From NCBI GenBank assembly GCA_950097015.1, contig CATNEN010000002.1, positions 7,130,001 to 7,194,000 of the forward strand: DNA of 64,000 nt, given 5' to 3'. Below, in pieces: positions 28,417 through 64,000 of this stretch; the first letter of the stretch is position 1, and each line of letters begins with the position of its first letter. Below the pieces are notes generated by a model. It searched no databases, was not told the origin of the DNA, and was given only the letters and a program-made list of their open reading frames with translations. Position numbers and translations under genes: made by a program. Origin of the DNA: Macrostomum hystrix (taxonomy: Eukaryota > Animalia > Platyhelminthes).

Positions 28417-28439
28417 GTTTGTGTGTCGACGCGAATTAA

Positions 28440-28570: not shown

Positions 28571-28990
28571 TATAGAAGAGCCCAACTGCATGGTCTGTCT
28601 GGGAAGCTCGTCCACTCAACTACTTTAACTACGAAGAATTAGTCTATGGTCAAAAGCCTCACTAGCACTCTATAGTCACGGTAGAGATTTAGCGCATCCA
28701 ACAAAAAAATCCGTCCACTTTTTCCTCCGATTTTTCTTAATTACCCTACACCTAATGTATGTTTAATGCTGTGAGTCGATATGCTTTTCGAGTGTCCTCG
28801 AAATGTCCACTGATATTTTAGTGGAGTCTTAGCATTTTTCCTTGCCTAGTTTTTTATAAATAGCAAAAAACAGGAAAGAATAGTATATTCTAACTCCCGA
28901 ATATAGTATATTCTTAACTCTATTAACTCCCGAATAGTCACTGAAACACAGGGCAGCTGCGAAAAGAAGGTTACTTATAATAAATCAGAG

Positions 28991-32335: not shown

Positions 32336-32588
32336 GACTACGAGATTTTACTAGCATTCAACAATAGATATTTCATAATTTGTTTTATCCCTGGCGTCCC
32401 TTGTGTTTTTACTGCTCTTATTTTTAATACCTTTGCTTTCCCTTCCCAGCTCGATATTTGATTCCTACTTAACTTCGCTTTTTATGTTGCTTTTCGTTGT
32501 TCATTTAAATGTGTTGTTAAAAAATATATATATAAAAAAATCAGCACCCATAGATGGCGTGCGCGTTTTAATAATAATAATAATAATA

Positions 32589-32698
32589 ATATTAGTACCC
32601 ATATGCTTTTAGGGCAAAAATCGGAAAGCCAGAGGCCGTTAGGCCGTCAGGCCGTTAGCATCCGATTTTTGCCCTAAGTTAACAATGGGTACTAATAT
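32589..32698. mobile_element. 110-bp palindromic MITE-like element adjoining a (TAA)n tract
   Basis: ATATTAGTACCCAT (32589-32602) pairs with ATGGGTACTAATAT (32685-32698); TTAGGGCAAAAATCGGA (32609-32625) pairs with TCCGATTTTTGCCCTAA (32661-32677). Confidence 0.7.
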
Positions 32699-38424: not shown

Positions 38425-39627
38425 ATGCCTGTGGCCTATGGGTTGAGTGGGACTGGCCAGCCTGAGGCCGAGAGGACCACTCCCTGCATCCACTGTCTCT
38501 CCCTTCATCTCTCCCTTCATCCCTCTTTCCGCGGCAACTCGCGAGACTTTGCGGTACGACTTCTGACTCTATCGCCATCCCCACACTCCTTTTCCTTCAC
38601 GAGGACAGATCATCGGATTGCAAACCCGCAACTATTTCAGAAGCTGTTTCTCGTATTCGGACTCATCTGGCCACTCGGATGCTGCAATCCTGCCGAATGG
38701 CAACGACTGGAAACCAGGCAGTGCCTGCCGGAGCTGCTGGCCCTCCAGACAGCGTTTCTGCGTAGCCAAATCGAATGCGCAACCATCGGCAACCAGATTA
38801 GCGGTCTGTTGGTGGCCCAGTTCGACTCGGACACTCGCCAGTGCTCGCTGTTCAAGTACATTGTCGTGTGCCACCTCATCAATGGACAAGCCAGCAATGG
38901 GATCAACGCACTGCACAGCTGTGCTGCATTTGCCAATGCCAGAGCCGTCAGCTTCATGACGCTGAGCAGGAAGCTGATGAGCAGTGTGGGCTCGAAGCTG
39001 CGTGCAGCGTGGGTGATGAGTGACGATGAGGAAGCCAGCAAGAGCAACTTGGTGTGCGGCGAGACGCTGCTGTGGCAGTCGGAGTCAGTCGAGTTCAGCA
39101 TTGATGGAGCCGTGCTAAATGGACAGTCGTCCAAGATGTCGCTGGAAGGAGTGGAGTTCGGCAACCCGCAGCAGGGGCTGACGTGGCTGGTCAGGCTCAA
39201 GCGAGTGGCTACGGCGGGACCGATTCTTTCGAGCTGCGACTGCAGCACCAAGACGCCTGGAATCTGGCTCTGGGACGGAGCTCCCAATAAGAGAGGCCTG
39301 TACTTCTTTAGGAATGCGCCAACGATTACGGCATATAAAACTGACCCGGGAACTAACACCTACGATCCGAATGTGTTCGTGGAAGTCGGCGTCAGCTCGG
39401 TGTCGCCATCGGACCGAGTCTTCTACTCAAACTCAGGCTTTGTGTCCGAGAGGAAAGTGTCTTTCAGCGATTCGGCTATTGGGTCGAATCTAGCGTTCCG
39501 TTGCGTCATAATGGGGTTCATGCACGGAGACACCCGGATGCTGAGCGGCACCGTACGCGCCGCGGCCATCGTGAACGACACGATGACAGAGGAGGAGATC
39601 CGCAGCTTCTTTGGCATGGTCCGCTGA
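38425..39627 (+). CDS. Probable secreted protein: degenerate PAN-like region + concanavalin A/LamG-like lectin domain (true start uncertain)
   Basis: 400-aa GC-rich frame with a hydrophobic segment LFLVFGLIWPLGCC and SQIECAT...FDSDTRQCSLF. The C-terminus (GAVLNGQSSKMSL...TWLVRLK...LSGTVRAAAIVNDTMTEEEIRSF) resembles LamG3/pentraxin-type ends. A possible splice acceptor lies at ~38603-38608. Confidence 0.6.
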   Translation: MPVAYGLSGTGQPEAERTTPCIHCLSLHLSLHPSFRGNSRDFAVRLLTLSPSPHSFSFTRTDHRIANPQLFQKLFLVFGLIWPLGCCNPAEWQRLETRQCLPELLALQTAFLRSQIECATIGNQISGLLVAQFDSDTRQCSLFKYIVVCHLINGQASNGINALHSCAAFANARAVSFMTLSRKLMSSVGSKLRAAWVMSDDEEASKSNLVCGETLLWQSESVEFSIDGAVLNGQSSKMSLEGVEFGNPQQGLTWLVRLKRVATAGPILSSCDCSTKTPGIWLWDGAPNKRGLYFFRNAPTITAYKTDPGTNTYDPNVFVEVGVSSVSPSDRVFYSNSGFVSERKVSFSDSAIGSNLAFRCVIMGFMHGDTRMLSGTVRAAAIVNDTMTEEEIRSFFGMVR

Positions 39628-40870: not shown

Positions 40871-41310
40871 GCTGGTGGTCCGATTCAAAGATATATTTCG
40901 TGCATGGCTCATACGCTCTCCTATGCGCACAACTTCACCAGTGCAAGAGAGGCTAAAGTCAATATAAAGTAAAAGTTTTGATCCAAGGCAAGTTAATTTA
41001 CGTCTATGGGTGTACTAGATTTAGATTTACCCCGTACTTAATTTGATGCGTATTTAAAAATATTTTTTGCTTGCCACTCTTGCTCACTCTTATCACTCTT
41101 AAGGTTCGATTCTGAGTTAAAATGGCAACCGTCTTTACTCTGCTGAGTCTGGGTTTCGTCTGTGCCCTTTTGGCCTGCATTACGAAACGTTGGAATCGCG
41201 GCGGACTGTTTGACTTGCAGGGTACGATATTGCTGAGTTGCTGAGATAACAAATGAACTTTTACACTCAGAATATAGTAGCCCGTTTAACTTTTACGTTT
41301 CCATTTGCAG

Positions 41311-42575
41311 AAAGGAGTTCTGCTGGCGATATTGTCAGAGTCATAGCCATCATCGGCACCGCTTTTTTGGGGGTTAGCCTGCTGTTCGAGTTGCTCAGGA
41401 TTATGGTCAAGAAGTTGAAGCAGAAAACTTGTATCAACGTAATGATCCTGATTTGCTGCATTATCAGCGGTGAGTACAAATCCTTGTTCCGCTAAATTTG
41501 CCCCGTGTTTAAGCCACAGCGTGAACCTTTCTCTCCCAGATTTTACGGCCCGCACCCACTACCCCAACTCTACAGCCCGCACCCACTACCCCAACTCTAC
41601 AGCCCGCACCCACTACCCCACCTCTACAGCCCGCACCCACTACCCCAACCCCAACTCTACGGCCCGCACCCACCACCCCAACTCTGCAGCCCGCACCCAC
41701 TACCCCAATACTTCGGCCCGCACCCACAACCCCAATACTTCGGCCCGCACCCACAACCCCAATACTTCGGCCCGCACCCACTACCCTAACTCTACAGCCC
41801 GCAGTCACAACCCCAACTCTACAGCCCGCACTCACAACCCCAACTCTACAGCCCGCACCCACTACCCTAACTCTACAGCCCGCAGTCACAACCCCAACTC
41901 TACAGCCCGCACTCACAACCCCAACTCTACAGCCCGCACTCACAACCCCAACTCTACAGCCCGCACTCACAACCCCAACTCTACAGCCCGCACCCACAAC
42001 CCCAATACTTCGGCCCGCACCCACAACCCCAATACTTCGGCCCGCACCCACTACCCTAACTCTACAGCCCGCAGTCACAACCCCAACTCTACAGCCCGCA
42101 CTCACAACCCCAACTCTACAGCCCGCACCCACTACCCTAACTCTACAGCCCGCAGTCACAACCCCAACTCTACAGCCCGCACTCACAACCCCAACTCTAC
42201 AGCCCGCACTCACAACCCCAACTCTACAGCCCGCACTCACAACCCCAACTCTACAGCCCGCACCCACAACCCCAACTCTGCGGCCCGCGCCCACCACCCA
42301 TCAGTAGCCGCACCCACCATCTAAATTGTAAGGCCAGTTCCGACGACCCCGAAGTCTATTTGAAAGTGATCTTTTTATGTCCACATGTCTCGAAGCATTT
42401 GTTTTAAGCGCTATCCTTGTATGTGCACCCCGCAGTTCTAGCGCTGTTATCTGGCCTCTGCATGTACGCCCGGTACTACACAACAGGCGGCTACAGCCTC
42501 TGGCTGCTGACTGCCAGCACTGTGTTCGCTACGGAAGCTATGATTGTGAACATCATGCAGTGCCGTCGCGGTTAA
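41311..42575 (+). CDS. 3' exons of a claudin/PMP22-like tetraspan membrane protein
   Basis: Exon 41311-41469 (tttgcag|...AGC G|gtgagt) and exon 42436-42575 (ccgcag|TT...TAA) join in phase 1. They give IVRVIAIIGTAFLGVSLLFELL...INVMILICCIISV LALLSGLCMYARYYTTGGYSLWLLTASTVFATEAMIVNIMQCRRG*, with three hydrophobic helices and a GYS.W motif. The first exon was not found. Confidence 0.6.
41545..42300. repeat. 27-bp intronic minisatellite (CCCCAACTCTACAGCCCGCACTCACAA)n
   Basis: Tandem units explain the TARTHNPNS pseudo-ORF. Confidence 0.95.
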
Positions 42576-42616: not shown

Positions 42617-43619
42617 TACTATTGGTTTTTAACTTCTATTTTAAACTAAGTAACTTCAATTTCGCCCGGCGGTTCTCCGACTGGTGTTAGTATTTCCATT
42701 TCGCCCGCGGGGAGGGGGATGCTCATGTGTACCCGATTATTAACTTCAATTTCGCCCGCGGGAGGGGGATGCTCATGTGTACCCGATTATTAACTTCAAT
42801 TTCGCCCGCGGGGAGGGGGTTGCTCATGTGTACCCGATTAGTAACTTCAATTTCGTCCGCGTGACCGGCCTGCCCAAGTTAGAGTAAATCAATTTCACAA
42901 AAGTAACTTCTATTACGTCTTGCATTATTTTCATACGGCTTCAAACATTAATATAGGCCATGATGGGTCTGTACTTTCAAAATATTTTTGGACGTCTCAG
43001 GCAAGACACCAAGTGGGAGACAAACAACAAAAAGAGTTCGTATTGTCGCTCCAATAAGATTGGAGCCTTAGGAGCGGCTGGATGTGAAAGTATTGGCGCT
43101 ATCCAATTAGCAGATTTTTTTGTCATTCTGTGTTATAGGGTCATAAATTCACAGGGCCATAAATCTCTCGACACTCGAAATAATTATCATAATTGCATTG
43201 CAGTGGAGTCGGTGGCGGCGTCGGCGTCGACGAAGATCAAAGACAAGGACATTGCCGGTATTTCACAGAGCGGACGCAAAAACAAATCGCTGGGCTGAAG
43301 AGACGAAATCTCGCGGGCGAAATTGAAGTTAATAATCGGGTACACATGAGCATCCCCCTCCCCGCGGGCGAAATTGAAGTTAATAATCGGGTACACATGA
43401 GCATCCCCCTCCCCGCGGGCGAAATTGAAGTTAATAATCGGGTACACATGAGCATCCCCCTCCCCGCGGGCGAAATTGAAGTTAATAATCGGGTACACAT
43501 GAGCATCCCCCTCCCCGCGGGCGAAATTGAAGTTAATAATCGGGTACACATGAGCATCCTCCTCCCGCGGGCGAAATCGAAGCTACTTAGTTTGAAATAG
43601 AAGTTGAAAACCAATAGTA
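42617..43619. mobile_element. Foldback-like element: long inverted arms made of 51-bp tandem units
   Basis: The left arm (42617-42861) and right arm (43312-43619) are reverse complements. Both have the outer TACTATTGGTTTT.AACTTCTATTT.AAACTAAGTA block plus 51-bp units (AACTTCAATTTCGCCCGCGGGGAGGGGGATGCTCATGTGTACCCGATTATT); the spacer is ~450 bp. Confidence 0.8.
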
Positions 43620-44558
43620 TTAGAAAGACAATTCAAATCGACAGGACAAAGACTGAAAGACATTGGCTTATTATACTTGCTGCAATATTTTCAACCGAAA
43701 CATAGAAAAAAACCCTAAGATATTTTTTTTATTTACCCTTTAACTCCAAATGCTTTTTCTTCCTTCTAAAATATTTAATGCGCTTTTTAGATTGGCGAAT
43801 ACTCAGAGTGAATTATTTTATATTGAATTTATTTTTGCATGACACCTCTCTCAGTTAGTCTGAGTACACTTTTAGCTGCTGCATGCCTTAGACCTGATTC
43901 TGATGATTCCCCCACTTGCCCCGGGCGAACATCTCTGTTTTCAGTTGAAACTTCATTTATTTGCATCGGTGCAAATACACAGTTCATTTCACTCGCGCGT
44001 AGAAAATATTAAAACGCTGCTTCTAACTGCTCAATAGTCTAAATCAATAAACTTCACTTTACTTCACCCAGAGCTCAAATTTAATTTGACCATAGCCATT
44101 AAATCATTTTTGCGGGCCTAGCGATGAGTTTTCAGGGCGTCAATGAGAAAACTTTTGCCTTGAATTTATCGATTGTCGCGGCCGCTCTCTCCAGCGCCCT
44201 GTGTGTCGCTAGGGCGGCCACCCCAACCTTAGGTTTTGACTAGCACTTGCGCTGGGCCGGGGGCAGTGTGCATAGGGCTTAAGCTCGTGTACACGCGCCG
44301 GCCTATAAATCACAAACTTTTGGGACGTGCTGCACGTTACCTGTTCTCCGTCAACTAAAAATATATATTACGTGGCTGCGATCGCCACACTATGGTAATT
44401 TTATTTTATTTTTTAATAACAAATAAAGATTAAACATAGAAACATGCGCATTCAAACAGCGACAGCAGTTATTTCTCACAAGCACGAAATAAACAACCAG
44501 TTAGTAAAAGTTAGTCTTATTAGCACTTCATTATCGAAACTATCAGACTGCAGGTAAA

Positions 44559-45855
44559 CTAGTCCTTCGCGCCGTGGATCTCGAACTTACAATTTTGAAA
44601 TGTTCCGGAAAAATTCACACTGATCGATTGTCCTGGCGACGGCGACTCAGCTTTTCCTTCGGCATGATGAACATTGCAGTTAGACATTGTTTCCTTTATC
44701 GACGTCACACCAGTAGGGCCCACACGTTTAACGCCCATGGTCGATGCACTGGCATCGACGGACAATGCTTCTGACATTGCTCGAAAGTCGGCGTCTCTCC
44801 TCATCCTGAAGTAACATTCCACACTCTCCGGCTTCCTGTGTCCCGCACTTTTAGCAATCGCTGAATTCGAAAATGCGTGCTTTTTTTAATCGTAACGTGG
44901 GTTACGCGAATACAATGATTCATGTAACGCTTAGAGAGGCCGAGATTATTCGACAGTTGAGTCATAAATTGATCGATCGTATTCTTGCCAACCGTACGGG
45001 AGACACAGTACCAGCGCTTATCTGATGTACCTTTCGAAACGTTGACACACTGCTTCGAGAAAAGCGACTGCAAGGCACATTTAGGCACTGCAGGTACATA
45101 TTCAAGGCAGCATCGGGACAATTTTGATTTTCGGAATCCGAATACATGCGTGTCTGCTTAGCATCATGTGATTCGGTCTTCTTCAGAGATGCCTTCGAGT
45201 TCTTACTTAGAAGGTCATGATTCAGTGCGACATAGGCACGGCCTTCAGAATCTTCTAAAAACACGAAACTTTCCTTAGTCAGCGTTGGTAGAGTTTCTCG
45301 TCCACGCAGTCCAAAATAATAAATTAGATGAAACATGACCTCCTGCTGCAGTATGACACCATTTGACCTATCAAAATAGCCCATGATTTTCTGCAGGTCA
45401 TTATTTTCAATTGCAGCAAACCTGTCTCGGTATTTGGGTTGATTGGCTAGCTTGTACTTGTGAACCATCGATACTAAAATTCGATTGGCATTACGCGAAA
45501 GCAATGTCCGCAATAATATTTATATCTGGACGGTTGAGACAGAAAAAGCGACGCAGTCCGGCTAGAATGCAGATCAGACTTGCTGGAGCATAGTACTGCT
45601 CGTCCTTTGTTCGCAGTCTCGAATAGAAGAAGCGTAAATGTTTGCCAAGATAGACTTTGGAATTTGTAACAGTTCAGTTGACAGCTTGCTTGCTTCCAAA
45701 AATCTCTTGAAGCTGTTCACATTTTCCTCGATCTGCCGTGCAGAAGAATCGGGCATGCCATCTCGCTCAAGCTCATTCAACATTGCGTCCTCCAGAATGT
45801 CTTGTATCTCCTCTGAATCTATCTTGCGCGCGAATTTCTCGCTTAGTTCTTCCAA
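44559..45855 (-). mobile_element. Second decayed Crypton-type DUF3504 tyrosine recombinase pseudogene
   Basis: Frames give FAAIENNDLQKIMGYFDRSNGVILQQEVMFHLIYYFGLRGRE, CPDAALNMYL, WY...VGKNTIDQFM..LS..LGLSKRYMNHCIRVT and GHRKPESVECY, with several frameshifts. Confidence 0.85.
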
Positions 45856-46484
45856 ATACCGACTGTTTGATTCTGATTATATCCAAGCTAACACTTCGGT
45901 TGACATACTGGAGACAATTTCTCAAAATTGTAAAAATTAATTTAATGGTTGATCATGGGTTAGACCGTCAAAAGAGCTAAATCCTGGCAGAGTTTAATCT
46001 ACAGCCAAGGACAACTTAATAACTCAGGACCGGAAACGAGCCAATTCATGGCGAAAAAAGTATGAGGCTCGTTTAAAAGCATTGTTCTATGGCCCATCCG
46101 TATGCGCATGCTTTCAGTTGCGAATGTATACTCGTATCATATTTGACTTTTTAATAGGCAGTCAGAAGGCGGGTGCAGGGTCGGTTTTCTTAAATGTTGA
46201 ATAGTTTTATTACATAAAAAACGTCGTGAAAATACACAATGGGAAAGCTGTACATGCAGCACATGTATAACGAAACTCGAGAAAAATTTACGATTCTTTC
46301 TTCATCTGAACTGCAAACAGAGAGGAAAATAACAGTCACATAACGGGACAAGAGCTGACTATGATTAATAGTAAAGTGACTAGCAAGTTTTGCCCCCCTT
46401 CGGGGAGCAGAAATATTTTGATTTCGTCCAGTATACACTTTTTAGCAGCTGCATTTTCAGCCTTTTTACGCTACAATGATCAGT

Positions 46485-47450
46485 TGACAATGATCCCCCA
46501 GTTGATAAAGATCCCCCAGTTGACAATAATCCCCCAGTTGACAATGATCCCCCAGTTGACAATGATCCCCCCGTTGACAATAATCCCCCAATTGATGATG
46601 ATCACGCAGTTGATTATGATCCCCCAGTTGACAATAATCCCTCAATTGATGATGATCACGCAGTTGACAATGATCCCCCAGTTAATGATGACTCCCCATT
46701 GATGATGATCCCCAGTTGACAATGTTCCCACAGCTGACAATGATCCCCGAGTTGACAATAATCCCCCAATTGATGATGATCACGCAGTTGACAATGATCC
46801 CCCAGTTAATGATGACTCCCCATTGATGATAATCTCCAGTTGACAACGTTCCCCCAGTTGACAATGTTCCCACAGTTGACAATGATCCCCCAGTTGATGA
46901 TGATCAACAAGTTGACAATGATCCCCCCAGTTCACAATGATCCTCCGGGTGATGATAAACCCCCAGTTGACAATGATCCCCAGTTGACAATGATCCCCCA
47001 GTTGACATTGACAATGATCTCCCAGTTGACAATGATCCCCCAGTTGACAATTATCCCCCAGTTAACCATGATCCCGCATTTGATGATGACTCCCCAGTTG
47101 ACAATTATCCCCCAGTTGACAATTATCCCCCCGTTGACAATGATCCTCCAGTTGACCATGATCCCCCAGTTGACGATTATCCCCCAGTCGACAATTATCT
47201 CTCAGTTGACTATGATCCCCCATTGATGGTGATCCCAGTTGACAATGTTCCCCCAGTTGAACATGATCCCCTAGTTGACAATGATCCCCTAGTTGATTAT
47301 GATCCCGCATTTGGTGATGTTTCCCCGTGACAATTATCCCCCAGTTGACAATTATCCCCCAGTTGCCAATGATCCTCCAGTTGACAATGATCCCCCAGTT
47401 GACAATTATCCCCCAGTTTACCATGATCCCCCAGTTGACGATTATCCACC
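46485..47450. repeat. 18-bp minisatellite (GTTGACAATGATCCCCCA)n
   Basis: Tandem units produce the LTMIPQ / NWGIIV pseudo-ORFs. The same array recurs at ~62900-63770. Confidence 0.95.
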
Positions 47451-47454
47451 AGTT

Positions 47455-50400
47455 CTGGTTTAGCTATGATTCAAACGCTGGGTTAGCCATGATTCAAACT
47501 CTGGTTTAGCCATGATTCAAACTCTGGTTTAGCCATGATTCAGAATCTAGTTTAGCCATGATTCAGACGCTGGTTTAGCTATGATTCAAACTCTGGTTTA
47601 GCCATGATTCAGACGCTGGTTTAGCTATGATTTAAACTCTGGTTTAGCCATGATTCAGACTCTGGTGTAGCCATGATTCAGACTCTGGTTTAGCCATGAT
47701 TCAGACTCTGGTTTAGCCATGATTCAGACTCTGGTTTAGCTATGAGCCATGATTCAGACTCTGGTGTAGCCATGATTCAGACTCTGGTTTAGCCATGATT
47801 CAAACTCTGTTTTAGCTATGATTCAAACTCTGGTTTTGCCATGATTCAGACGCTTGTTTAGCTATGATTCAAACTCTGGTTTAGCTATGAGCCATGATTC
47901 AGACTCTGGTGTAGCCATGAATCAGACTCTGGTTTAGCCATGATTCAAACTCTGGTTTAGCTATGATTTAAACTCTGGTTTTGCCATGATTCAAACTCTG
48001 GTTTAGCCATGATTCAGACTCTGGTTTAGCTATGATTCAGACTCTGGTGTAGCCATGATTCAGACTCTGGTTTAGCCATGATTCAGACTCTGGTTTAGCC
48101 TTGATTCAGACTCTGGTTTAGCCATGATTCAGACTCTGGTTTAGCCTTGATTCAGACTCTGGTTTAGCCATGATTCAGACTCTGGTTTAGCCATGATTCA
48201 GACTCTGGTTTAGCCATGATTCAGACTCTGGTTTAGCTATGATTCAAACTCTGGTTTAGCCATGATTCAGACTCTGGTTTAGCCTTGATTCAGACTCTGG
48301 TTTAGCCATGATTCAGACTCTGGTTTAGCCATGATTCAGACTCTGGTTTAGCCATGATTCAGACTCTGGTGTAGCCATGATTCAGACTCTGGTTTAGCCT
48401 TGATTCAGACTCTGGTTTAGCCATGATTCAGACTCTGGTTTAGCCATGATTCAGACTCTGGTTTAGCCATGATTCAGACTCTGGTGTAGCCATGATTCAG
48501 ACTCTGCATGGTTTAGCCATGATCCAGACTCTGATTTAGCCATGATTCAGACTCTGGTTTAGCCATGATTCAGACTCTGGTGTAGCCATGATTCAGACTC
48601 TGGTTTAGCCATGATTCAGACTCTGGTTTAGCTATGATTCAAACTCTGGTTTAGCCATGATTCAGACTCTGGTTTAGCCATGATTCAGACTCTGGTTTAG
48701 CCATGATTCAAACTCTGGTTTAGCCATGATTCAGACTCTGGTGTAGCCATGATTCAGACTCTGGTTTAGCTATGATTCAAACTCTGGTTTAGCCATGATT
48801 CAGACTCTGGTTTAGCCATGATTCAGACTCTGGTGTAGCCATGATTCAGACTCTGGTTTAGCTATGATTCAAACTCTGGTTTAGCCATGATTCAGACTCT
48901 GGTTTAGCCATGATTCAGACTCTGGTGTAGCCATGATTCAGACTCTGGTTTAGCCATGATTCAAACTCTGGTTTAGCCATGATTCAGACTCTGGTTTAGC
49001 CATGATTCAGACTCTGGTTTAGCTATGATTCAAACTCTGGTTTAGCCATGATTCAGACTCTGGTTTAGCCATGATTCAGACTCTGGTGTAGCCATGATTC
49101 AGACTCTGGTTTAGCTATGATTCAAACTCTGGTTTAGCCATGATTCAGACTCTGGTTTAGCCATGATTCAGACTCTGGTGTAGCCATGATTCAGACTCTG
49201 GTTTAGCCATGATTCAGACTCTGGTTTAGCCTTGATTCAGACTCTGGTTTAGCCATGATTCAGACTCTGGTGTAGCCATGATTCAGACTCTGGTTTAGCC
49301 ATGATTCAGACTCTGGTGTAGCCATGATTCAGACTCTGGTTTAGCCATGATCCAGACTCTGGTTTAGCCTTGATTCAGACTCTGGTTTAGCCATGATTCA
49401 AACTCTGTTTTAGCCGGTGTGCTATGATTTATGATATTTTATTTACGAAATGAAAAAAATAATATAAAATAGTCTTCAATCACTACTGGCTGAAAATTAG
49501 TCTAAATGATTTGATGCAGTGCAGAATCGAACCCTAGCCTAGCCTAACCTATTCCTAGTGCCTACACATCGGCTATTCCGACTGTTGGTTAGTGGGTGCA
49601 AAAATCAGCCTTATAAAATGAATTCTCAAAGTTCTGGCTTTGTACAATGAAGTAAGAAAATAGAGTACACTCAGTCTTGCGGTTGGTTGTGTACATTTAT
49701 TTCCAATTTGTCTCCAGAGTGCAGGCTTCAAATTCAATCAGCTAGGGGTTGTTGCGCAATTTGACGATGCAATTCTAATTCAGTGGCAGTGAGTAAAATT
49801 CTCAATAGGCCAAGATGGTTTGACCTTTGAAAAATCATGTTTTTCGAATATTTAATCCCTTTAGCAATAAAGTTAAGCTTAATAAAAATACGTGTATAAT
49901 TGTCCCCATATTTAGCATCTTTTGGTGAAGAAATGGTGAAAATCGGTTGAGCCGTTCGGGAGAAAATCAATTACAACCAAGCAAGCATTTCATTTTTAGT
50001 ATAGTGGCCATGATTCAGACTCTGGTTTAGCCATGATTCAAACTCTGTTTTAGCTATGATTCAAACTCTGGTTTTGCCATGATTCAGACGCTTGTTTAGC
50101 TATGATTCAAACTCTGGTTTAGCTATGAGCCATGATTCAGACTCTGGTGTAGCCATGAATCAGACTCTGGTTTAGCCATGATTCAAACTCTGGTTTAGCT
50201 ATGATTTAAACTCTGGTTTTGCCATGATTCAAACTCTGGTTTAGCCATGATTCAGACTCTGGTTTAGCTATGATTCAGACTCTGGTGTAGCCATGATTCA
50301 GACTCTGGTTTAGCCATGATTCAGACTCTGGTTTAGCCTTGATTCAGACTCTGGTTTAGCCATGATTCAGACTCTGGTTTAGCCTTGATTCAGACTCTGG

Positions 50401-53400
50401 TTTAGCCATGATTCAGACTCTGGTTTAGCCATGATTCAGACTCTGGTTTAGCCATGATTCAGACTCTGGTTTAGCTATGATTCAAACTCTGGTTTAGCCA
50501 TGATTCAGACTCTGGTTTAGCCTTGATTCAGACTCTGGTTTAGCCATGATTCAGACTCTGGTTTAGCCATGATTCAGACTCTGGTTTAGCCATGATTCAG
50601 ACTCTGGTGTAGCCATGATTCAGACTCTGGTTTAGCCTTGATTCAGACTCTGGTTTAGCCATGATTCAGACTCTGGTTTAGCCATGATTCAGACTCTGGT
50701 TTAGCCATGATTCAGACTCTGGTGTAGCCATGATTCAGACTCTGGTTTAGCCATGATTCAGACTCTGGTTTAGCCTTGATTCAGACTCTGGTTTAGCCAT
50801 GATTCAGACTCTGGTTTAGCCATGATTCAGACTCTGGTTTAGCCATGATTCAGACTCTGGTGTAGCCATGATTCAGACTCTGGTTTAGCCTTGATTCAGA
50901 CTCTGGTTTAGCCATGATTCAGACTCTGGTTTAGCCATGATTCAGACTCTGGTTTAGCCATGATTCAGACTCTGGTGTAGCCATGATTCAGACTCTGCAT
51001 GGTTTAGCCATGATCCAGACTCTGATTTAGCCATGATTCAGACTCTGGTTTAGCCATGATTCAGACTCTGGTGTAGCCATGATTCAGACTCTGGTTTAGC
51101 CATGATTCAGACTCTGGTTTAGCTATGATTCAAACTCTGGTTTAGCCATGATTCAGACTCTGGTTTAGCCATGATTCAGACTCTGGTTTAGCCATGATTC
51201 AAACTCTGGTTTAGCCATGATTCAGACTCTGGTTTAGCCATGATTCAGACTCTGGTTTAGCTATGATTCAAACTCTGGTTTAGCCATGATTCAGACTCTG
51301 GTTTAGCCATGATTCAGACTCTGGTGTAGCCATGATTCAGACTCTGGTTTAGCTATGATTCAAACTCTGGTTTAGCCATGATTCAGACTCTGGTTTAGCC
51401 ATGATTCAGACTCTGGTGTAGCCATGATTCAGACTCTGGTTTAGCCATGATTCAGACTCTGGTTTAGCCTTGATTCAGACTCTGGTTTAGCCATGATTCA
51501 GACTCTGGTGTAGCCATGATTCAGACTCTGGTTTAGCCATGATTCAGACTCTGGTGTAGCCATGATTCAGACTCTGGTTTAGCCATGATCCAGACTCTGG
51601 TTTAGCCTTGATTCAGACTCTGGTTTAGCCATGATTCAAACTCTGTTTTAGCCGGTGTGCTATGATTTATGATATTTTATTTACGAAATGAAAAAAATAA
51701 TATAAAATAGTCTTCAATCACTACTGGCTGAAAATTAGTCTAAATGATTTGATGCAGTGCAGAATCGAACCCTAGCCTAGCCTAACCTATTCCTAGTGCC
51801 TACACATCGGCTATTCCGACTGTTGGTTAGTGGGTGCAAAAATCAGCCTTATAAAATGAATTCTCAAAGTTCTGGCTTTGTACAATGAAGTAAGAAAATA
51901 GAGTACACTCAGTCTTGCGGTTGGTTGTGTACATTTATTTCCAATTTGTCTCCAGAGTGCAGGCTTCAAATTCAATCAGCTAGGGGTTGTTGCGCAATTT
52001 GACGATGCAATTCTAATTCAGTGGCAGTGAGTAAAATTCTCAATAGGCCAAGATGGTTTGACCTTTGAAAAATCATGTTTTTCGAATATTTAATCCCTTT
52101 AGCAATAAAGTTAAGCTTAATAAAAATACGTGTATAATTGTCCCCATATTTAGCATCTTTTGGTGAAGAAATTGTGAAAATCGGTTGAGCCGTTCGGGAG
52201 AAAATCAATTACAACCAAGCAAGCATTTCATTTTTAGTATAGTGGCCATGATTCAGACTCTGGTTTAGCCATGATTCAAACTCTGTTTTAGCTATGATTC
52301 AAACTCTGGTTTTGCCATGATTCAGACGCTTGTTTAGCTATGATTCAAACTCTGGTTTAGCTATGAGCCATGATTCAGACTCTGGTGTAGCCATGAATCA
52401 GACTCTGGTTTAGCCATGATTCAAACTCTGGTTTAGCTATGATTTAAACTCTGGTTTTGCCATGATTCAAACTCTGGTTTAGCCATGATTCAGACTCTGG
52501 TTTAGCTATGATTCAGACTCTGGTGTAGCCATGATTCAGACTCTGGTTTAGCCATGATTCAGACTCTGGTTTAGCCTTGATTCAGACTCTGGTTTAGCCA
52601 TGATTCAGACTCTGGTTTAGCCTTGATTCAGACTCTGGTTTAGCCATGATTCAGACTCTGGTTTAGCCATGATTCAGACTCTGGTGTAGCCATGATTCAG
52701 ACTCTGGTTTAGCCATGATTCAGACTCTGGTTTAGCTATGATTCAAACTCTGGTTTAGCCATGATTCAGACTCTGGTTTAGCTATGATTCAGACTCTGGT
52801 TTAGCCATGATTCAGACTCTGGTTTAGCCATGATTCAGACTCTGGTTTAGCCATGATTCAGACTCTGGTGTAGCCATGATTCAGACTCTGGTTTAGCCTT
52901 GATTCAGACTCTGGTTTAGCCATGATTCAGACTCTGGTTTAGCCATGATTCAGACTCTGGTTTAGCCATGATTCAGACTCTGGTGTAGCCATGATTCAGA
53001 CTCTGCATGGTTTAGCCATGATCCAGACTCTGATTTAGCCATGATTCAGACTCTGGTTTAGCCATGATTCAGACTCTGGTGTAGCCATGATTCAGACTCT
53101 GGTTTAGCCATGATTCAGACTCTGGTTTAGCTATGATTCAAACTCTGGTTTAGCCATGATTCAGACTCTGGTTTAGCCATGATTCAGACTCTGGTTTAGC
53201 CATGATTCAAACTCTGGTTTAGCCATGATTCAGACTCTGGTGTAGCCATGATTCAGACTCTGGTTTAGCTATGATTCAAACTCTGGTTTAGCCATGATTC
53301 AGACTCTGGTTTAGCCATGATTCAGACTCTGGTGTAGCCATGATTCAGACTCTGGTTTAGCTATGATTCAAACTCTGGTTTAGCCATGATTCAGACTCTG

Positions 53401-56400
53401 GTTTAGCCATGATTCAGACTCTGGTGTAGCCATGATTCAGACTCTGGTTTAGCCATGATTCAGACTCTGGTTTAGCCTTGATTCAGACTCTGGTTTAGCC
53501 ATGATTCAGACTCTGGTGTAGCCATGATTCAGACTCTGGTTTAGCCATGATTCAGACTCTGGTGTAGCCATGATTCAGACTCTGGTTTAGCCATGATCCA
53601 GACTCTGGTTTAGCCTTGATTCAGACTCTGGTTTAGCCATGATTCAAACTCTGTTTTAGCCGGTGTGCTATGATTTATGATATTTTATTTACGAAATGAA
53701 AAAAATAATATAAAATAGTCTTCAATCACTACTGGCTGAAAATTAGTCTAAATGATTTGATGCAGTGCAGAATCGAACCCTAGCCTAGCCTAACCTATTC
53801 CTAGTGCCTACACATCGGCTATTCCGACTGTTGGTTAGTGGGTGCAAAAATCAGCCTTATAAAATGAATTCTCAAAGTTCTGGCTTTGTACAATGAAGTA
53901 AGAAAATAGAGTACACTCAGTCTTGCGGTTGGTTGTGTACATTTATTTCCAATTTGTCTCCAGAGTGCAGGCTTCAAATTCAATCAGCTAGGGGTTGTTG
54001 CGCAATTTGACGATGCAATTCTAATTCAGTGGCAGTGAGTAAAATTCTCAATAGGCCAAGATGGTTTGACCTTTGAAAAATCATGTTTTTCGAATATTTA
54101 ATCCCTTTAGCAATAAAGTTAAGCTTAATAAAAATACGTGTATAATTGTCCCCATATTTAGCATCTTTTGGTGAAGAAATTGTGAAAATCGGTTGAGCCG
54201 TTCGGGAGAAAATCAATTACAACCAAGCAAGCATTTCATTTTTAGTATAGTGGCCATGATTCAGACTCTGGTTTAGCCATGATTCAAACTCTGTTTTAGC
54301 TATGATTCAAACTCTGGTTTTGCCATGATTCAGACGCTTGTTTAGCTATGATTCAAACTCTGGTTTAGCTATGAGCCATGATTCAGACTCTGGTGTAGCC
54401 ATGAATCAGACTCTGGTTTAGCCATGATTCAAACTCTGGTTTAGCTATGATTTAAACTCTGGTTTTGCCATGATTCAAACTCTGGTTTAGCCATGATTCA
54501 GACTCTGGTTTAGCTATGATTCAGACTCTGGTGTAGCCATGATTCAGACTCTGGTTTAGCCATGATTCAGACTCTGGTTTAGCCTTGATTCAGACTCTGG
54601 TGTAGCCATGATTCAGACTCTGGTTTAGCCTTGATTCAGACTCTGGTTTAGCCATGATTCAGACTCTGGTTTAGCCATGATTCAGACTCTGGTTTAGCCA
54701 TGATTCAGACTCTGGTTTAGCTATGATTCAAACTCTGGTTTAGCCATGATTCAGACTCTGGTTTAGCCTTGATTCAGACTCTGGTTTAGCCATGATTCAG
54801 ACTCTGGTTTAGCCATGATTCAGACTCTGGTTTAGCCATGATTCAGACTCTGGTGTAGCCATGATTCAGACTCTGGTTTAGCCTTGATTCAGACTCTGGT
54901 TTAGCCATGATTCAGACTCTGGTTTAGCCATGATTCAGACTCTGGTTTAGCCATGATTCAGACTCTGGTGTAGCCATGATTCAGACTCTGCATGGTTTAG
55001 CCATGATCCAGACTCTGATTTAGCCATGATTCAGACTCTGGTTTAGCCATGATTCAGACTCTGGTGTAGCCATGATTCAGACTCTGGTTTAGCCATGATT
55101 CAGACTCTGGTTTAGCTATGATTCAAACTCTTGTTTAGCCATGATTCAGACTCTGGTTTAGCCTTGATTCAGACTCTGGTTTAGCCATGATTCAAACTCT
55201 GGTTTAGCCATGATTCAGACTCTGGTGTAGCCATGATTCAGACTCTGGTTTAGCTATGATTCAAACTCTGGTTTAGCCATGATTCAGACTCTGGTTTAGC
55301 CATGATTCAGACTCTGGTGTAGCCATGATTCAGACTCTGGTTTAGCTATGATTCAAACTCTGGTTTAGCCATGATTCAGACTCTGGTTTAGCCATGATTC
55401 AGACTCTGGTGTAGCCATGATTCAGACTCTGGTTTAGCCATGATTCAGACTCTGGTTTAGCCTTGATTCAGACTCTGGTTTAGCCATGATTCAGACTCTG
55501 GTGTAGCCATGATTCAGACTCTGGTTTAGCCATGATTCAGACTCTGGTGTAGCCATGATTCAGACTCTGGTTTAGCCATGATCCAGACTCTGGTTTAGCC
55601 TTGATTCAGACTCTGGTTTAGCCATGATTCAAACTCTGTTTTAGCCGGTGTGCTATGATTTATGATATTTTATTTACGAAATGAAAAAAATAATATAAAA
55701 TAGTCTTCAATCACTACTGGCTGAAAATTAGTCTAAATGATTTGATGCAGTGCAGAATCGAACCCTAGCCTAGCCTAACCTATTCCTAGTGCCTACACAT
55801 CGGCTATTCCGACTGTTGGTTAGTGGGTGCAAAAATCAGCCTTATAAAATGAATTCTCAAAGTTCTGGCTTTGTACAATGAAGTAAGAAAATAGAGTACA
55901 CTCAGTCTTGCGGTTGGTTGTGTACATTTATTTCCAATTTGTCTCCAGAGTGCAGGCTTCAAATTCAATCAGCTAGGGGTTGTTGCGCAATTTGACGATG
56001 CAATTCTAATTCAGTGGCAGTGAGTAAAATTCTCAATAGGCCAAGATGGTTTGACCTTTGAAAAATCATGTTTTTCGAATATTTAATCCCTTTAGCAATA
56101 AAGTTAAGCTTAATAAAAATACGTGTATAATTGTCCCCATATTTAGCATCTTTTGGTGAAGAAATTGTGAAAATCGGTTGAGCCGTTCGGGAGAAAATCA
56201 ATTACAACCAAGCAAGCATTTCATTTTTAGTATAGTGGCCATGATTCAGACTCTGGTTTAGCCATGATTCAAACTCTGTTTTAGCTATGATTCAAACTCT
56301 GGTTTTGCCATGATTCAGACGCTTGTTTAGCTATGATTCAAACTCTGGTTTAGCTATGAGCCATGATTCAGACTCTGGTGTAGCCATGAATCAGACTCTG

Positions 56401-59400
56401 GTTTAGCCATGATTCAAACTCTGGTTTAGCTATGATTTAAACTCTGGTTTTGCCATGATTCAAACTCTGGTTTAGCCATGATTCAGACTCTGGTTTAGCT
56501 ATGATTCAGACTCTGGTGTAGCCATGATTCAGACTCTGGTTTAGCCATGATTCAGACTCTGGTTTAGCCTTGATTCAGACTCTGGTGTAGCCATGATTCA
56601 GACTCTGGTTTAGCCTTGATTCAGACTCTGGTTTAGCCATGATTCAGACTCTGGTTTAGCCATGATTCAGACTCTGGTTTAGCCATGATTCAGACTCTGG
56701 TTTAGCTATGATTCAAACTCTGGTTTAGCCATGATTCAGACTCTGGTTTAGCCTTGATTCAGACTCTGGTTTAGCCATGATTCAGACTCTGGTTTAGCCA
56801 TGATTCAGACTCTGGTTTAGCCATGATTCAGACTCTGGTGTAGCCATGATTCAGACTCTGGTTTAGCCTTGATTCAGACTCTGGTTTAGCCATGATTCAG
56901 ACTCTGGTTTAGCCATGATTCAGACTCTGGTTTAGCCATGATTCAGACTCTGGTGTAGCCATGATTCAGACTCTGCATGGTTTAGCCATGATCCAGACTC
57001 TGATTTAGCCATGATTCAGACTCTGGTTTAGCCATGATTCAGACTCTGGTGTAGCCATGATTCAGACTCTGGTTTAGCCATGATTCAGACTCTGGTTTAG
57101 CTATGATTCAAACTCTGGTTTAGCCATGATTCAGACTCTGGTTTAGCCTTGATTCAGACTCTGGTTTAGCCATGATTCAAACTCTGGTTTAGCCATGATT
57201 CAGACTCTGGTGTAGCCATGATTCAGACTCTGGTTTAGCTATGATTCAAACTCTGGTTTAGCCATGATTCAGACTCTGGTTTAGCCATGATTCAGACTCT
57301 GGTGTAGCCATGATTCAGACTCTGGTTTAGCTATGATTCAAACTCTGGTTTAGCCATGATTCAGACTCTGGTTTAGCCATGATTCAGACTCTGGTGTAGC
57401 CATGATTCAGACTCTGGTTTAGCCATGATTCAGACTCTGGTTTAGCCTTGATTCAGACTCTGGTTTAGCCATGATTCAGACTCTGGTGTAGCCATGATTC
57501 AGACTCTGGTTTAGCCATGATTCAGACTCTGGTGTAGCCATGATTCAGACTCTGGTTTAGCCATGATCCAGACTCTGGTTTAGCCTTGATTCAGACTCTG
57601 GTTTAGCCATGATTCAAACTCTGTTTTAGCCGGTGTGCTATGATTTATGATATTTTATTTACGAAATGAAAAAAATAATATAAAATAGTCTTCAATCACT
57701 ACTGGCTGAAAATTAGTCTAAATGATTTGATGCAGTGCAGAATCGAACCCTAGCCTAGCCTAACCTATTCCTAGTGCCTACACATCGGCTATTCCGACTG
57801 TTGGTTAGTGGGTGCAAAAATCAGCCTTATAAAATGAATTCTCAAAGTTCTGGCTTTGTACAATGAAGTAAGAAAATAGAGTACACTCAGTCTTGCGGTT
57901 GGTTGTGTACATTTATTTCCAATTTGTCTCCAGAGTGCAGGCTTCAAATTCAATCAGCTAGGGGTTGTTGCGCAATTTGACGATGCAATTCTAATTCAGT
58001 GGCAGTGAGTAAAATTCTCAATAGGCCAAGATGGTTTGACCTTTGAAAAATCATGTTTTTCGAATATTTAATCCCTTTAGCAATAAAGTTAAGCTTAATA
58101 AAAATACGTGTATAATTGTCCCCATATTTAGCATCTTTTGGTGAAGAAATTGTGAAAATCGGTTGAGCCGTTCGGGAGAAAATCAATTACAACCAAGCAA
58201 GCATTTCATTTTTAGTATAGTGGCCATGATTCAGACTCTGGTTTAGCCATGATTCAAACTCTGTTTTAGCTATGATTCAAACTCTGGTTTTGCCATGATT
58301 CAGACGCTTGTTTAGCTATGATTCAAACTCTGGTTTAGCTATGAGCCATGATTCAGACTCTGGTGTAGCCATGAATCAGACTCTGGTTTAGCCATGATTC
58401 AAACTCTGGTTTAGCTATGATTTAAACTCTGGTTTTGCCATGATTCAAACTCTGGTTTAGCCATGATTCAGACTCTGGTTTAGCTATGATTCAGACTCTG
58501 GTGTAGCCATGATTCAGACTCTGGTTTAGCCATGATTCAGACTCTGGTTTAGCCTTGATTCAGACTCTGGTTTAGCCATGATTCAGACTCTGGTTTAGCC
58601 TTGATTCAGACTCTGGTTTAGCCATGATTCAGACTCTGGTTTAGCCATGATTCAGACTCTGGTTTAGCCATGATTCAGACTCTGGTTTAGCTATGATTCA
58701 AACTCTGGTTTAGCCATGATTCAGACTCTGGTTTAGCCTTGATTCAGACTCTGGTTTAGCCATGATTCAGACTCTGGTTTAGCCATGATTCAGACTCTGG
58801 TTTAGCCATGATTCAGACTCTGGTGTAGCCATGATTCAGACTCTGGTTTAGCCTTGATTCAGACTCTGGTTTAGCCATGATTCAGACTCTGGTTTAGCCA
58901 TGATTCAGACTCTGGTTTAGCCATGATTCAGACTCTGGTGTAGCCATGATTCAGACTCTGCATGGTTTAGCCATGATCCAGACTCTGATTTAGCCATGAT
59001 TCAGACTCTGGTTTAGCCATGATTCAGACTCTGGTGTAGCCATGATTCAGACTCTGGTTTAGCCATGATTCAGACTCTGGTTTAGCTATGATTCAAACTC
59101 TGGTTTAGCCATGATTCAGACTCTGGTTTAGCCATGATTCAGACTCTGGTTTAGCCATGATTCAAACTCTGGTTTAGCCATGATTCAGACTCTGGTGTAG
59201 CCATGATTCAGACTCTGGTTTAGCTATGATTCAAACTCTGGTTTAGCCATGATTCAGACTCTGGTTTAGCCATGATTCAGACTCTGGTGTAGCCATGATT
59301 CAGACTCTGGTTAAGCTATGATTCAAACTCTGGTTTAGCCATGATTCAGACTCTGGTTTAGCCATGATTCAGACTCTGGTGTAGCCATGATTCAGACTCT

Positions 59401-60462
59401 GGTTTAGCCATGATTCAAACTCTGGTTTAGCCATGATTCAGACTCTGGTGTAGCCATGATTCAGACTCTGGTTTAGCTATGATTCAAACTCTGGTTTAGC
59501 CATGATTCAGACTCTGGTTTAGCCATGATTCAGACTCTGGTGTAGCCATGATTCAGACTCTGGTTTAGCTATGATTCAAACTCTGGTTTAGCCATGATTC
59601 AGACTCTGGTTTAGCCATGATTCAGACTCTGGTGTAGCCATGATTCAGACTCTGGTTTAGCCATGATTCAGACTCTGGTTTAGCCTTGATTCAGACTCTG
59701 GTTTAGCCATGATTCAGACTCTGGTGTAGCCATGATTCAGACTCTGGTTTAGCCATGATTCAGACTCTGGTGTAGCCATGATTCAGACTCTGGTTTAGCC
59801 ATGATCCAGACTCTGGTTTAGCCTTGATTCAGACTCTGGTTTAGCCATGATTCAAACTCTGTTTTAGCCGGTGTGCTATGATTTATGATATTTTATTTAC
59901 GAAATGAAAAAAATAATATAAAATAGTCTTCAATCACTACTGGCTGAAAATTAGTCTAAATGATTTGATGCAGTGCAGAATCGAACCCTAGCCTAGCCTA
60001 ACCTATTCCTAGTGCCTACACATCGGCTATTCCGACTGTTGGTTAGTGGGTGCAAAAATCAGCCTTATAAAATGAATTCTCAAAGTTCTGGCTTTGTACA
60101 ATGAAGTAAGAAAATAGAGTACACTCAGTCTTGCGGTTGGTTGTGTACATTTATTTCCAATTTGTCTCCAGAGTGCAGGCTTCAAATTCAATCAGCTAGG
60201 GGTTGTTGCGCAATTTGACGATGCAATTCTAATTCAGTGGCAGTGAGTAAAATTCTCAATAGGCCAAGATGGTTTGACCTTTGAAAAATCATGTTTTTCG
60301 AATATTTAATCCCTTTAGCAATAAAGTTAAGCTTAATAAAAATACGTGTATAATTGTCCCCATATTTAGCATCTTTTGGTGAAGAAATGGTGAAAATCGG
60401 TTGAGCCGTTCGGGAGAAAATCAATTACAACCAAGCAAGCATTTCATTTTTAGTATAGTGGA
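47455..60462. repeat. Higher-order repeat: 23-bp minisatellite (GCCATGATTCAGACTCTGGTTTA)n blocks alternating with six copies of a ~593-bp segment
   Basis: The segment copies lie at ~49415-50007, 51653-52245, 53661-54253, 55646-56238, 57631-58223 and 59869-60462. Spacings are 2238, 2008, 1985, 1985 and 2238, all differing by multiples of 23. Confidence 0.95.
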
Positions 60463-62805
60463 CTAGCTGCCCTTCGCTACCCTCTGGGTAGCCTACCTTG
60501 AGTTCTTATCTTATCAGTGCGTTATCAAAATGATGCAATCATTAAAATTGGCACTGGAGGCCTCACTGTGCACAAGCTGAAAACAAGAATGCATTAGAAA
60601 AGCCTATTTAAAACTGTTTTTCGAATATTTAATCCCCTTGGCAATGGAATTAAGCTTAATAAAAATACGTGTACCGATTCCAGCCCAATTGCGATCTTTT
60701 AGTGAAGGAATTTTGAAAATCGGTTGAGCCGTTCGGGAGCTAGTCGATTGCAAACATACAAACATACAAACATACAAGATTTTCATTTTTAGTATATTAG
60801 ACTAGCTGCCTTCGCTACCCTCTGGGTAGCCTCCCTGTGAGTTCTTATCAGTACGCGCGTGCGTTATCAAAACTGGCTCTGATGCAATCATTAAATTTGG
60901 CACTGGAGGCCTCACTGTGCACAAGCTGAAAACAAGAATGCATTATAAAAGCCTATTTAAAACAGTTTTTCGAATATTTAATCCCCTTGGCAATGGAATT
61001 AAGCTTAATAAAAATACGTGTACCGATTCCGGCCCAATTGCGATGTTTTAGTGAAAGAATTTTGAAAATCGGTTGAGCCGTTCGGGAGCTAGTCGATTGC
61101 AAACATACAAACATACAAGATTTTCATTTTTAGTATATAAGACTAGCTGCCTTCGCTACCCTCTGGGTAGCCTCACTTGAGTTCTTATCAGTGCGTTATC
61201 AAAATTGGCTCTGATGCAATCATTAAAATTGGCACTGGAGCCTCACTGTGCACAAGCTGAAAACAAGAATGCATTAGAAAAGCCTATTTAAAACTGTTTT
61301 TCGAATATTTAATCCCCTTGGCAATGGAATTAAGCTTAATAAAAATACGTGTACCGATTCCAGCCCAATTGCGATCTTTTAGTGAAAGAATTTCGAAAAT
61401 CGGTTGAGCCGTTCGGGAGCTAGTCGATTGCAAACATACAAGCAAGCAAGATTTTCATTTTTAGTATATTAGACTAGCTGCCTTCGCTACCCTCTGGGTA
61501 GCCTCCCTGTGAGTTCTTATCAGTACGCGCGTGCGTTATCAAAACTGGCTCTGATGCAATCATTAAATTTGGCACTGGAGGCCTCACTGTGCACAAGCTG
61601 AAAACAAGAATGCATTATAAAAGCCTATTTAAAACAGTTTTTCGAATATTTAATCCCCTTGGCAATGGAATTAAGCTTAATAAAAATACGTGTACCGATT
61701 CCGGCCCAATTGCGATGTTTTAGTGAAAGAATTTTGAAAATCGGTTGAGCCGTTCGGGAGCTAGTCGATTGCAAACATACAAACATACAAGATTTTCATT
61801 TTTAGTATATAAGACTAGCTGCCTTCGCTACCCTCTGGGTAGCCTCACTGGAGTTCTTATCAGTTCGTTATCAAAACTGGCTCTGATGCAATCATAAAAA
61901 TTGGCACTGGAGCCTCACTGTGCACAAGCTGAAAACAAGAATGCATTAGAAAAGCCTATTTAAAACTGTTTTTCGAATATTTAATCCCCTCTGCAATGGA
62001 ATTAAGCTTAATAAAATTACGTGTACCGATTCCGGCCCAATTGTGATATTTTGGCGAAGGAATTGTGAAAATCGGTTAAGCCGTTCGGGAGCTAGTCGAT
62101 TGCAAACAAGCAAGCAAGATTTTCATTTTTAGTATATTAGACTAGCTGCCTTCGCTACCCTCTGGGTAGCCTCCCTGTGAGTTCTTATCAGTACGCGCGT
62201 GCGTTATCAAAACTGGCTCTGATGCAATCATTAAAATTGGCACTGGAGGCCTCACTGTGCACAAGCTGAAAACAAGAATGCATTAGAAAAGCCTATTTAA
62301 AACTGTTTTTCGAATATTTAATCCCCTTGCCAATGGAATTAAGCTTAATAAAATTACGTGTACCGATTCCGGCCCATTTGTGATCTTTTGGCGAAGGAAT
62401 TGCGAAAATCGGTTGAGCCGTTCGGGAGCTAGTCGATTGCAAACAAGCAAGCAAGATTTTCATTTTTAGTATATTAGACTAGCTGCCTTCGCTACCCTCT
62501 GGGTAGCCTCACTGGAGTTCTTATCAGTTCGTTATCAAAACTGGCTCTGATGCAATCATTAAAGTTGGCACTGGAGCCTCACTGTGCACAAGCTGAAAAC
62601 AAGAATGCATTAGAAAAGCCTATTTAAAACTGTTTTTCGAATATTTAATCCCCTTGGCAATGGAATTAACCTTAATAAAAATACGTGTACCGATTCCGGC
62701 CCATTTGTGATCTTTTGGCGAAGGAATTGCGAAAATCGGTTGAGCCGTTCGGGAGCTAGTCGATTGCAAACAAGCAAGCAAGATTTTCATTTTTAGTATA
62801 TTAGA
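60463..62805 (-). mobile_element. Tandem array of seven ~335-bp non-autonomous mini-Helitrons
   Basis: Units begin (plus strand CTAG) at 60463, 60802, 61143, 61474, 61815, 62142 and 62479. On the minus strand each reads TCT(A/T)ATATACTAAAAATG...GCTACCC-AGA-GGGTAGC hairpin, GAAGGCAG, CTAG. Each contains a (CAAACATA/CAAG)n microsatellite near its 5' end. Confidence 0.85.
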
Positions 62806-64000
62806 CTAGCATGTTTTGCCCCCCTTCGGGGAGCAGAAATACTTTTAATTCGTCTAGTATATACTTTTTAGCAGCTGAATTTACAGCTTTTTATAGCTAC
62901 AATGAACCCCCAGTTGACAATGATCCCCCAGCCCCAGTTGATGATGATCCCCAAGTTGATGATGATCCCCTAGTTGACAATTCTCCCAGTTGACAATGAT
63001 CCCCCAGTTGACAATGAACCCCCAGTTGACAATGAACCCCCAGTTAACAAAGATCCCCCAGTTGACAATGATCCCCCAGTTGACAATGATCCCCCAGTTG
63101 ACAATGATCCCACAGTTGACAATGATCCCCCAGTTGACAAAGATCCCCAGTTCACAATGATCCCCCAGTTGTCAATGATCCCACAGTTGAAAATGATCCC
63201 CCAGTTGACAATGATCCCCCAGTTGACAATGATCCCCCAGTTAACAATGATCCCCAAGTTAACAAAGATCCCCCAGTTCACAATGATCCCCCAGTTGATG
63301 ATGACTCCCCATTGATGATGATCCCCAGTTAACAATGTTCCTCCAGTTGACAATGTTCCCCCAGTTGACAATGATCCCCCAGTTGATGATGATCACCCAG
63401 TTGACAATGATCCCCCAGTTGACAATGATCCCCCAGTTGACAATGATCCCCCTGTTGACAATGATCCCCCAGTTGATAATGATCCCGCGCGTTGACAATG
63501 ATCCCACAGTTGACAATGATCCCCCAGTTGACAATGATCCCCCAGTTGACAAAGATCCCCAGTTCACAATGATCCCCCAGTTGATGATGATCCCCCAGTT
63601 GAAAATGATCCCCCATGCAGTTGACAATGATCCCCCAGTTGAAAATGATCCCCCAGTTGACAATGATCCCCCAGTTGACAATGATCCCCCAGTTGACAAT
63701 GATCCCCCAGTTTACCATGATCCCCCAGTTCACCATGATCCCCATTTTGATGATGACTCCCCAGTTGACGTTGATTTTTCAAACGCTGGGTTAGCCAAGA
63801 TTCAAACTCAGGTTTCGCCATGTTTTAAACCCTGGTGGGCTATGATTCAAACTCTCGTTTTGCCATGATTCAAACTCTGGTTTAGCCATGATTCAAACGC
63901 TGGGTTAGCCATGATTGAAACTCGGTTTTTGCCATGATTCAAACTCTGGTTTAGCCATGATTCAGACTCTAGTTTAGCCATGATTCAGACTCTGGTTTAG
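62806..64000 (-). mobile_element. Second copy of the large Helitron (element B), 3' portion, continuing beyond the window
   Basis: Plus strand CTAGCATGTTTTGCCCCCTTCGGGGAGCAGAAATA at 62806 matches 46380. It is followed by the same 18-bp and then 23-bp arrays. Confidence 0.8.

Follow-up and report, generated by a model that had tools for sequence, protein, structure and literature searches.

A one-way train of predicted non-autonomous Helitrons in the flatworm Macrostomum hystrix

The stretch of DNA analyzed here, referred to as the window, comprises 64,000 nucleotides from the flatworm Macrostomum hystrix (assembly GCA_950097015.1, contig CATNEN010000002.1, positions 7,130,001 to 7,194,000 of the forward strand). 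Its last 17,621 bp, at 46380-64000, are an uninterrupted block of mobile-element units, all on the minus strand: the 3' part of a large element B, then seven mini-elements (minis M1 to M7), then a block A of six related units. We consider it fairly probable that this block is a one-way train of non-autonomous Helitron1-type elements, in which whole elements were added at the A/TC of a resident 5' end (a slash marks a junction between units or the point of insertion) and were subsequently amplified in place. The order of the units, with the 3' end of B at 62806, the minis at 62805-60463 and A at 60462-46380, had been given in a preliminary description made from the sequence alone, and the mini starts at 62805, 62478, 62141, 61814, 61473, 61142 and 60801 bear it out. 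The units of the train are:

62806-64000, minus strand: element B, 3' part only, continuing past the window; 23-bp minisatellite at 63778-64000, 18-bp minisatellite at 62899-63769, hairpin at 62818-62834, CTAG at 62806-62809
62479-62805, minus strand: mini M1, 327 bp; TC start, hairpin and CTAG end
62142-62478, minus strand: mini M2, 337 bp; 5' part like M1, 3' part like M4 and M6
61815-62141, minus strand: mini M3, 327 bp
61474-61814, minus strand: mini M4, 341 bp; identical to M6
61143-61473, minus strand: mini M5, 331 bp
60802-61142, minus strand: mini M6, 341 bp; identical to M4
60463-60801, minus strand: mini M7, 339 bp; hairpin 9 nt before CTAG, CTAG/TCC join to A
58224-60462, minus strand: A1; intact 5' end (TCCAC...), 588-bp head, about 72 units of a 23-mer, no 3' end
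56239-58223, minus strand: A2, 1985 bp; 5' end without its first T, 23-mer array, 3'-truncated
54254-56238, minus strand: A3, 1985 bp; like A2, with one substitution
52246-54253, minus strand: A4, 2008 bp; like A2, plus one 23-mer
50008-52245, minus strand: A5, 2238 bp; like A2, plus eleven 23-mers
46380-50007, minus strand: A6, 3628 bp; head without its first T, 23-mer array, 18-mer array at 46481-47454, hairpin at 46392-46408, CTAG at 46380-46383

Eight joins in the train read CTAG/TC, all on the minus strand and with zero bases between the units. As the preliminary description had noted, a GC hairpin precedes CTAG at every one of the nine 3' ends: a 7-bp stem lies 8 nt before CTAG in all but M7, where the distance is 9 nt. 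Taken singly these hairpins are modest (z about -2); it is their recurrence at every 3' end, rather than any one of them, that constitutes the evidence. A hairpin with CTAG/T occurs at nine sites in the array and at none in positions 1-46379, the baseline from shuffles being about 1.25 hairpin-plus-CTRR/T sites per 46 kb. Similarly, all 13 copies of a 16-nt 5' motif lie inside the array (0.99 expected at up to 3 mismatches). The units start with TC in all seven minis and in A1, while A2-A6 lack the T and the start of B lies beyond the window. No terminal inverted repeats or target site duplications were seen for the array elements; the base after the last CTAG (46379) is a T, and the base upstream of the train falls past the window edge.

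A search with a looser 5' pattern returned one true-looking relative, in a JGI (Joint Genome Institute) metagenome contig from an unrelated source (L004:1-100). This lone copy has the same 5' design, namely TC, TATACTA, a TGTY microsatellite and AACGGCT..ACCGATTT, and the base immediately before it is a host A, in support of the 5' boundary of the array elements. Three viral and eight genome matches to the same pattern were discarded as chance, since they have no TC start or microsatellite. Given the terminal anatomy and this relative, the identification of the units as Helitrons, already made in the preliminary description, is well supported, and they would represent non-autonomous Helitron1-type elements of a new family. 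An assignment to Helentron or Helitron2 was rejected: the ends are TC and hairpin-CTAG, and the first 100 nt form no stable 5' fold-back. Nor was pairing seen between the 3' and 5' ends of the minis. No coding capacity was found in the array and no Rep/helicase within the window. Further copies of the family's ends are absent from positions 1-46379, an Rfam search gave no match for the array, and the exact 24-nt 5' core had no match in metagenome contigs. A 20-kb Macrostomum lignano locus, reached via paralogues of a host open reading frame (ORF), is not syntenic and contains no related Helitron.

One departure from the preliminary description concerns block A, which it had treated as one large element. 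The block has six 5' ends, at 60462, 58223, 56238, 54253, 52245 and 50007, and one 3' end, in A6 only; this is why the train holds 13 5' motifs and not 8. The five other A units (1985-2238 bp) each consist of the 588-bp head and 61-72 copies of the 23-mer, breaking off inside this 23-bp minisatellite. All five internal joins read ...AATCATGG/CCACTATAC: CTAG and hairpin are both missing, the 5' TC has lost its T, and one base of possible microhomology is present. The earlier statement that all units join as CTAG/TC thus holds for the eight exact joins described above and fails for these five. The breakpoint is the same in all five, within 2 nt of the 5' end, indicating that the internal join arose once; its closeness to the nick site (within 2 nt) suggests an event begun by Rep and imprecisely repaired. 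In-place amplification of this one non-canonical junction, which the preliminary description had missed, makes up 59% of the whole block (10,454 of 17,621 bp).

But how did the A units multiply? Over 2238 nt, A1 and A6 are 2 substitutions apart, and the heads of A1-A6 vary at one site in 587 nt. At head position 73, A2-A5 have one base in common and the outer units A1 and A6 another, and the length differences among A2-A5 amount to 23, 230 or 253 bp, all multiples of 23. The two observations together imply several amplification steps, and the different base in the outer and the four inner units cannot be accounted for by one burst or by the integration of one circle. Unless haplotypes were mixed in the assembly, these variants would call for duplication in A, mutation and renewed growth. 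We also considered that A had inserted into its own array as a nested copy, and rejected this, as the target is not A/T and no leftover array lies after 46380.

The minis have a more tangled history. M4 and M6 are identical, and the remaining pairs differ by 6-20 substitutions plus indels (2-6%). Their 5' halves group M1-3 versus M4-7, whereas their 3' halves alternate between short and long, and 83 of 253 site pairs are incompatible, with incompatibility rising with distance (r 0.40, permutation p 0.0004). This conflict between the halves and its dependence on distance mark the minis as recombinant mosaics. The exact tract common to M4 and M6 is 403 nt long, not a 672-nt dimer; it reaches from 35 nt ahead of one unit junction to 27 nt past another, and would be compatible with whole-unit placement and with a single conversion event alike. 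The single rolling-circle concatemer put forward as one origin in the preliminary description is not supported by either set of units: the minis are mosaics up to 20 substitutions plus indels apart, and the A units differ in a single-nucleotide polymorphism and in gains and losses of 23-mers.

Which parts do the unit types have in common? The minis and A have a common 5' end, the first 165-190 nt being 86-89% identical and the sequence divergent beyond, while A and B have a common 3' end (85/94 nt, 90%) and both minisatellites. The two families of the preliminary description are too simple a division: the window appears to hold two 3' types and, as far as visible, one 5' lineage. Because the 5' end is common, and is the part that the Helraiser element cannot do without (PMC5876387), one Rep could serve the minis and A alike.

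The most probable explanation, in our view, is growth in two stages. In the first, a Rep/helicase supplied in trans would add whole elements at one site, most simply the A/TC of a resident 5' end, where the CTAG of the newcomer would meet the resident TC. The joins between B and M1 and between M7 and A1 connect unlike units base-precisely, so tandem duplication cannot be their source, and at least three insertion events (A, one or more minis, and B) would be needed in the window, with A presumably the oldest and B the youngest. Helraiser cuts its own 5' end and joined ends precisely and reversibly (PMC4778049, PMC5876387), and prefers AT as a target, with TT, AC and AA as the main alternatives (PMC4778049). 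Given these preferences, insertion at CTAG/T is not required. In the second stage, shown in part by the amplified join in A and the mosaic minis, the block grew in place: a single imprecise break-and-join in A would have set the middle of a 23-mer array beside base 2-3 of the 5' end, probably through a Rep nick or a stalled transposition mended by a template switch or by way of a terminator-less circle. The resulting 2-kb A unit would then have been copied up to six in several steps, and unequal exchange or conversion would have enlarged the run of minis and reshuffled it. Imprecision of this kind is known for Helraiser: precise junctions were present in only 49% of sequenced circles (PMC5876387), and alternative hairpin-less ends with short overlaps occur (PMC4778049). 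Two points weigh against two-stage growth: the tract of identity between M4 and M6 equally fits placement of a whole unit, including between two existing units and thus at a G/T target, and the mosaicism of the minis could predate insertion, having arisen among the source copies.

The first of these points leads to an alternative in which Helitrons inserted at G/T, either at resident 3' ends or at CTAG/TC junctions inside the train, with Rep re-cutting joined ends and most minis being separate insertions from different sources. We regard this as unlikely. The preliminary description had named a related route, repeated targeting of the CTAG/T left by earlier insertions, which becomes dispensable once A/TC is available as a target but is compatible with the M4-M5-M6 arrangement and with the re-cutting of joined ends by Helraiser. 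M4 and M6 indeed flank the unlike M5 with an identity tract that ends near the unit junctions, the minis are 2-6% apart, and purified Helraiser cuts joined CTAG/TC ends precisely and reversibly (PMC5876387). However, GT is not among the main alternative Helraiser targets (TT, AC, AA), a single conversion event also accounts for the identity of M4 and M6, and the 5' halves are common to neighbors in blocks (M1-3, M4-7) while the 3' halves alternate, as exchange in place predicts.

Alternatively, the train could have been built elsewhere, by 3' read-through or as a rolling-circle concatemer, and have arrived here in one or two composite pieces. About 12% of Helraiser events take up DNA flanking the 3' end (PMC4778049), terminator-less circles are held responsible, in the account given in PMC12628747, for arrays in which many 5' ends go with one 3' end, and the common 5' end of A and the minis would let one Rep move both. 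We nevertheless judge a prebuilt train improbable: one burst would yield identical copies, yet the minis are up to 20 substitutions apart and the base state of A differs between the outer units and the four inner ones, and the origin of the unlike joins is merely shifted to another locus. Finally, the copy numbers might in part be an assembly artifact, an expanded or haplotype-mixed repeat, chiefly in the six near-identical A units, whose heads vary at so few positions. This we think very improbable, as the A units can be told apart by how many 23-mers they hold and in what order the variants stand, the minis differ individually, and repeat expansion cannot create joins of unlike units.

We would like to place two-stage growth in the context of other Helitron arrays. 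The family is new and the arrangement is known: both stages have published precedents. Like canonical Helitrons (Helitron1, Helraiser/Helibat1 and the non-autonomous lepidopteran Hel-2 elements, the last with TC, a tetranucleotide microsatellite and hairpin-CTAG; PMC4344730), the flatworm elements have a 5' TC, an AT-rich box, a tetranucleotide microsatellite and a GC hairpin near CTAG; in contrast to them, the family bears 23- and 18-bp minisatellites, and the window has no Rep/helicase. For the first stage, dissimilar Helitrons lie head to tail in the r1 region of maize (Du et al. 2008, PMC2267711), and in Myotis insertions that abut one another were described (Grabundzija 2016, PMC4778049). 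In those cases, as in the flatworm array, different elements meet in an exact CTAG/TC join, which is explained there by consecutive insertion, with the A/TC route named. However, these are pairs, whereas in the flatworm array no fewer than nine 3' ends follow one another.

For the second stage, truncated plant Helitrons are arrayed so that numerous 5' ends accompany a single 3' end (Xiong, Dooner and Du 2016, as reported in PMC12628747). As described there, these are tandem, with several 5' ends and one 3' end as in block A; block A differs from that description in that its join loses the 5' T and its copies change stepwise rather than in one burst. The multiple 5' termini of Fusarium FoHeli elements (PMC5148889) involve a repeated unit of under 200 bp, compared with 2 kb in block A. 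Satellites borne by Helitrons or Helentrons are known from oyster, Drosophila (DINE-TR1), Xenopus (Heli2Xen) and Hydractinia, the last with a 372-bp subtelomeric repeat (PMC12628747, PMC12001565, PMC11934779). The flatworm array resembles them in having internal minisatellites between conserved ends and small whole elements as a 330-bp satellite-like run. Helentrons, however, have subterminal inverted repeats, and the array ends are of the Helitron1 type (TC, hairpin-CTAG) without them. This single locus is thus a further example of Helitron trains and of Helitron-derived satellite formation, with both known routes in one place: unlike elements that join exactly, and a many-5', one-3' block in which the 23-mer variants record the history.

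The flank downstream of the train deserves separate attention. After the CTAG of A, the sequence continues as TCACTTTACTATT..., which outwardly looks like another CTAG/TC join and is in fact the left end of a Crypton:

44367-46379 (ends approximate), minus strand: broken Crypton-type element with a frameshifted tyrosine recombinase, flanking and outside the train

Its ORF pieces match 460-aa DUF3504/integrase proteins over their full length, at about 40% to marine relatives, and in free relatives comparable ACTATT..CATAG and CATAG motifs lie a short way in from the ends. The segment had also been considered as a third Helitron with a recombinase, having a TC start and a CTAG at 44240. This reading was rejected because the segment at 44240-46379 agrees with free Cryptons in size and end motifs and has no hairpin before that CTAG (z +0.65); it also lacks the AACGGCT-ACCGATT box. 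The left end of the Crypton differs from the Helitron 5' end by 2 edits in 12 nt and 4 in 17 nt, a post hoc likeness that 0.2-6% of control sites also reach (the share varies with length and control) and a weak hint of 5'-like target choice.

Could insertion at 5' ends be a rule? Tentatively, and with more doubt than confidence, we propose that a Rep in Macrostomum hystrix prefers the 5' ends of resident Helitrons, or lookalikes, as its target, in which case most new copies would join mixed one-way trains of tens of kb. The likeness of the Crypton left end, the first landing site here, to the 5' terminus would fit such a preference. If true, such end-directed integration would put a rule in place of the chance use of any A/T, and 5'-end targeting far above the A/T background would bear on Helitron target choice and on the origin of heterologous tandems.

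Further Crypton-type sequences were encountered. A second, different and broken Crypton-like recombinase remnant lies at about 27000-28700 on the minus strand, 28% identical to the first group and accompanied by a CCATAGAC motif and an AT-rich minisatellite upstream. In a metagenome contig of 4 kb, two different Crypton-type recombinase genes stand in tandem (L020:554-3817).

The rest of the window holds several other features, and none of its proteins had an exact match in the protein collection. An apparently intact ORF of 1114 codons of a long interspersed nuclear element (LINE), encoding endonuclease and reverse transcriptase, occupies 28991-32335 on the plus strand; its nearest relatives are 25-29% identical. 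Just past it, at 32579-32707, lies an imperfect palindrome of about 130 bp, possibly a small miniature inverted-repeat transposable element (MITE), and inverted arrays of a 51-bp repeat (42617-42864 and 43309-43619) bound a segment of roughly 1 kb in a foldback- or MITE-like manner. A 400-codon ORF at 38425-39627 (plus strand) has no Pfam match, its kin being M. lignano proteins (PAA88331.1, 57% at the amino acid level; nearest gene 69% at the nucleotide level) and small metagenome proteins. Many unrelated minisatellites with repeats of 16-30 bp, each 0.2-1.4 kb long, recur every 3-4 kb across 4859-42299. Several minisatellites apparently lie within introns or genes: in a SPATA6-like gene (2179-2577), a BTB gene (12931-13431) and an IQ-motif gene (19710-20516). 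Three short exon-like pieces at 41100-42570 on the plus strand, split by a 27-bp minisatellite, look by eye like a candidate small hydrophobic membrane protein.

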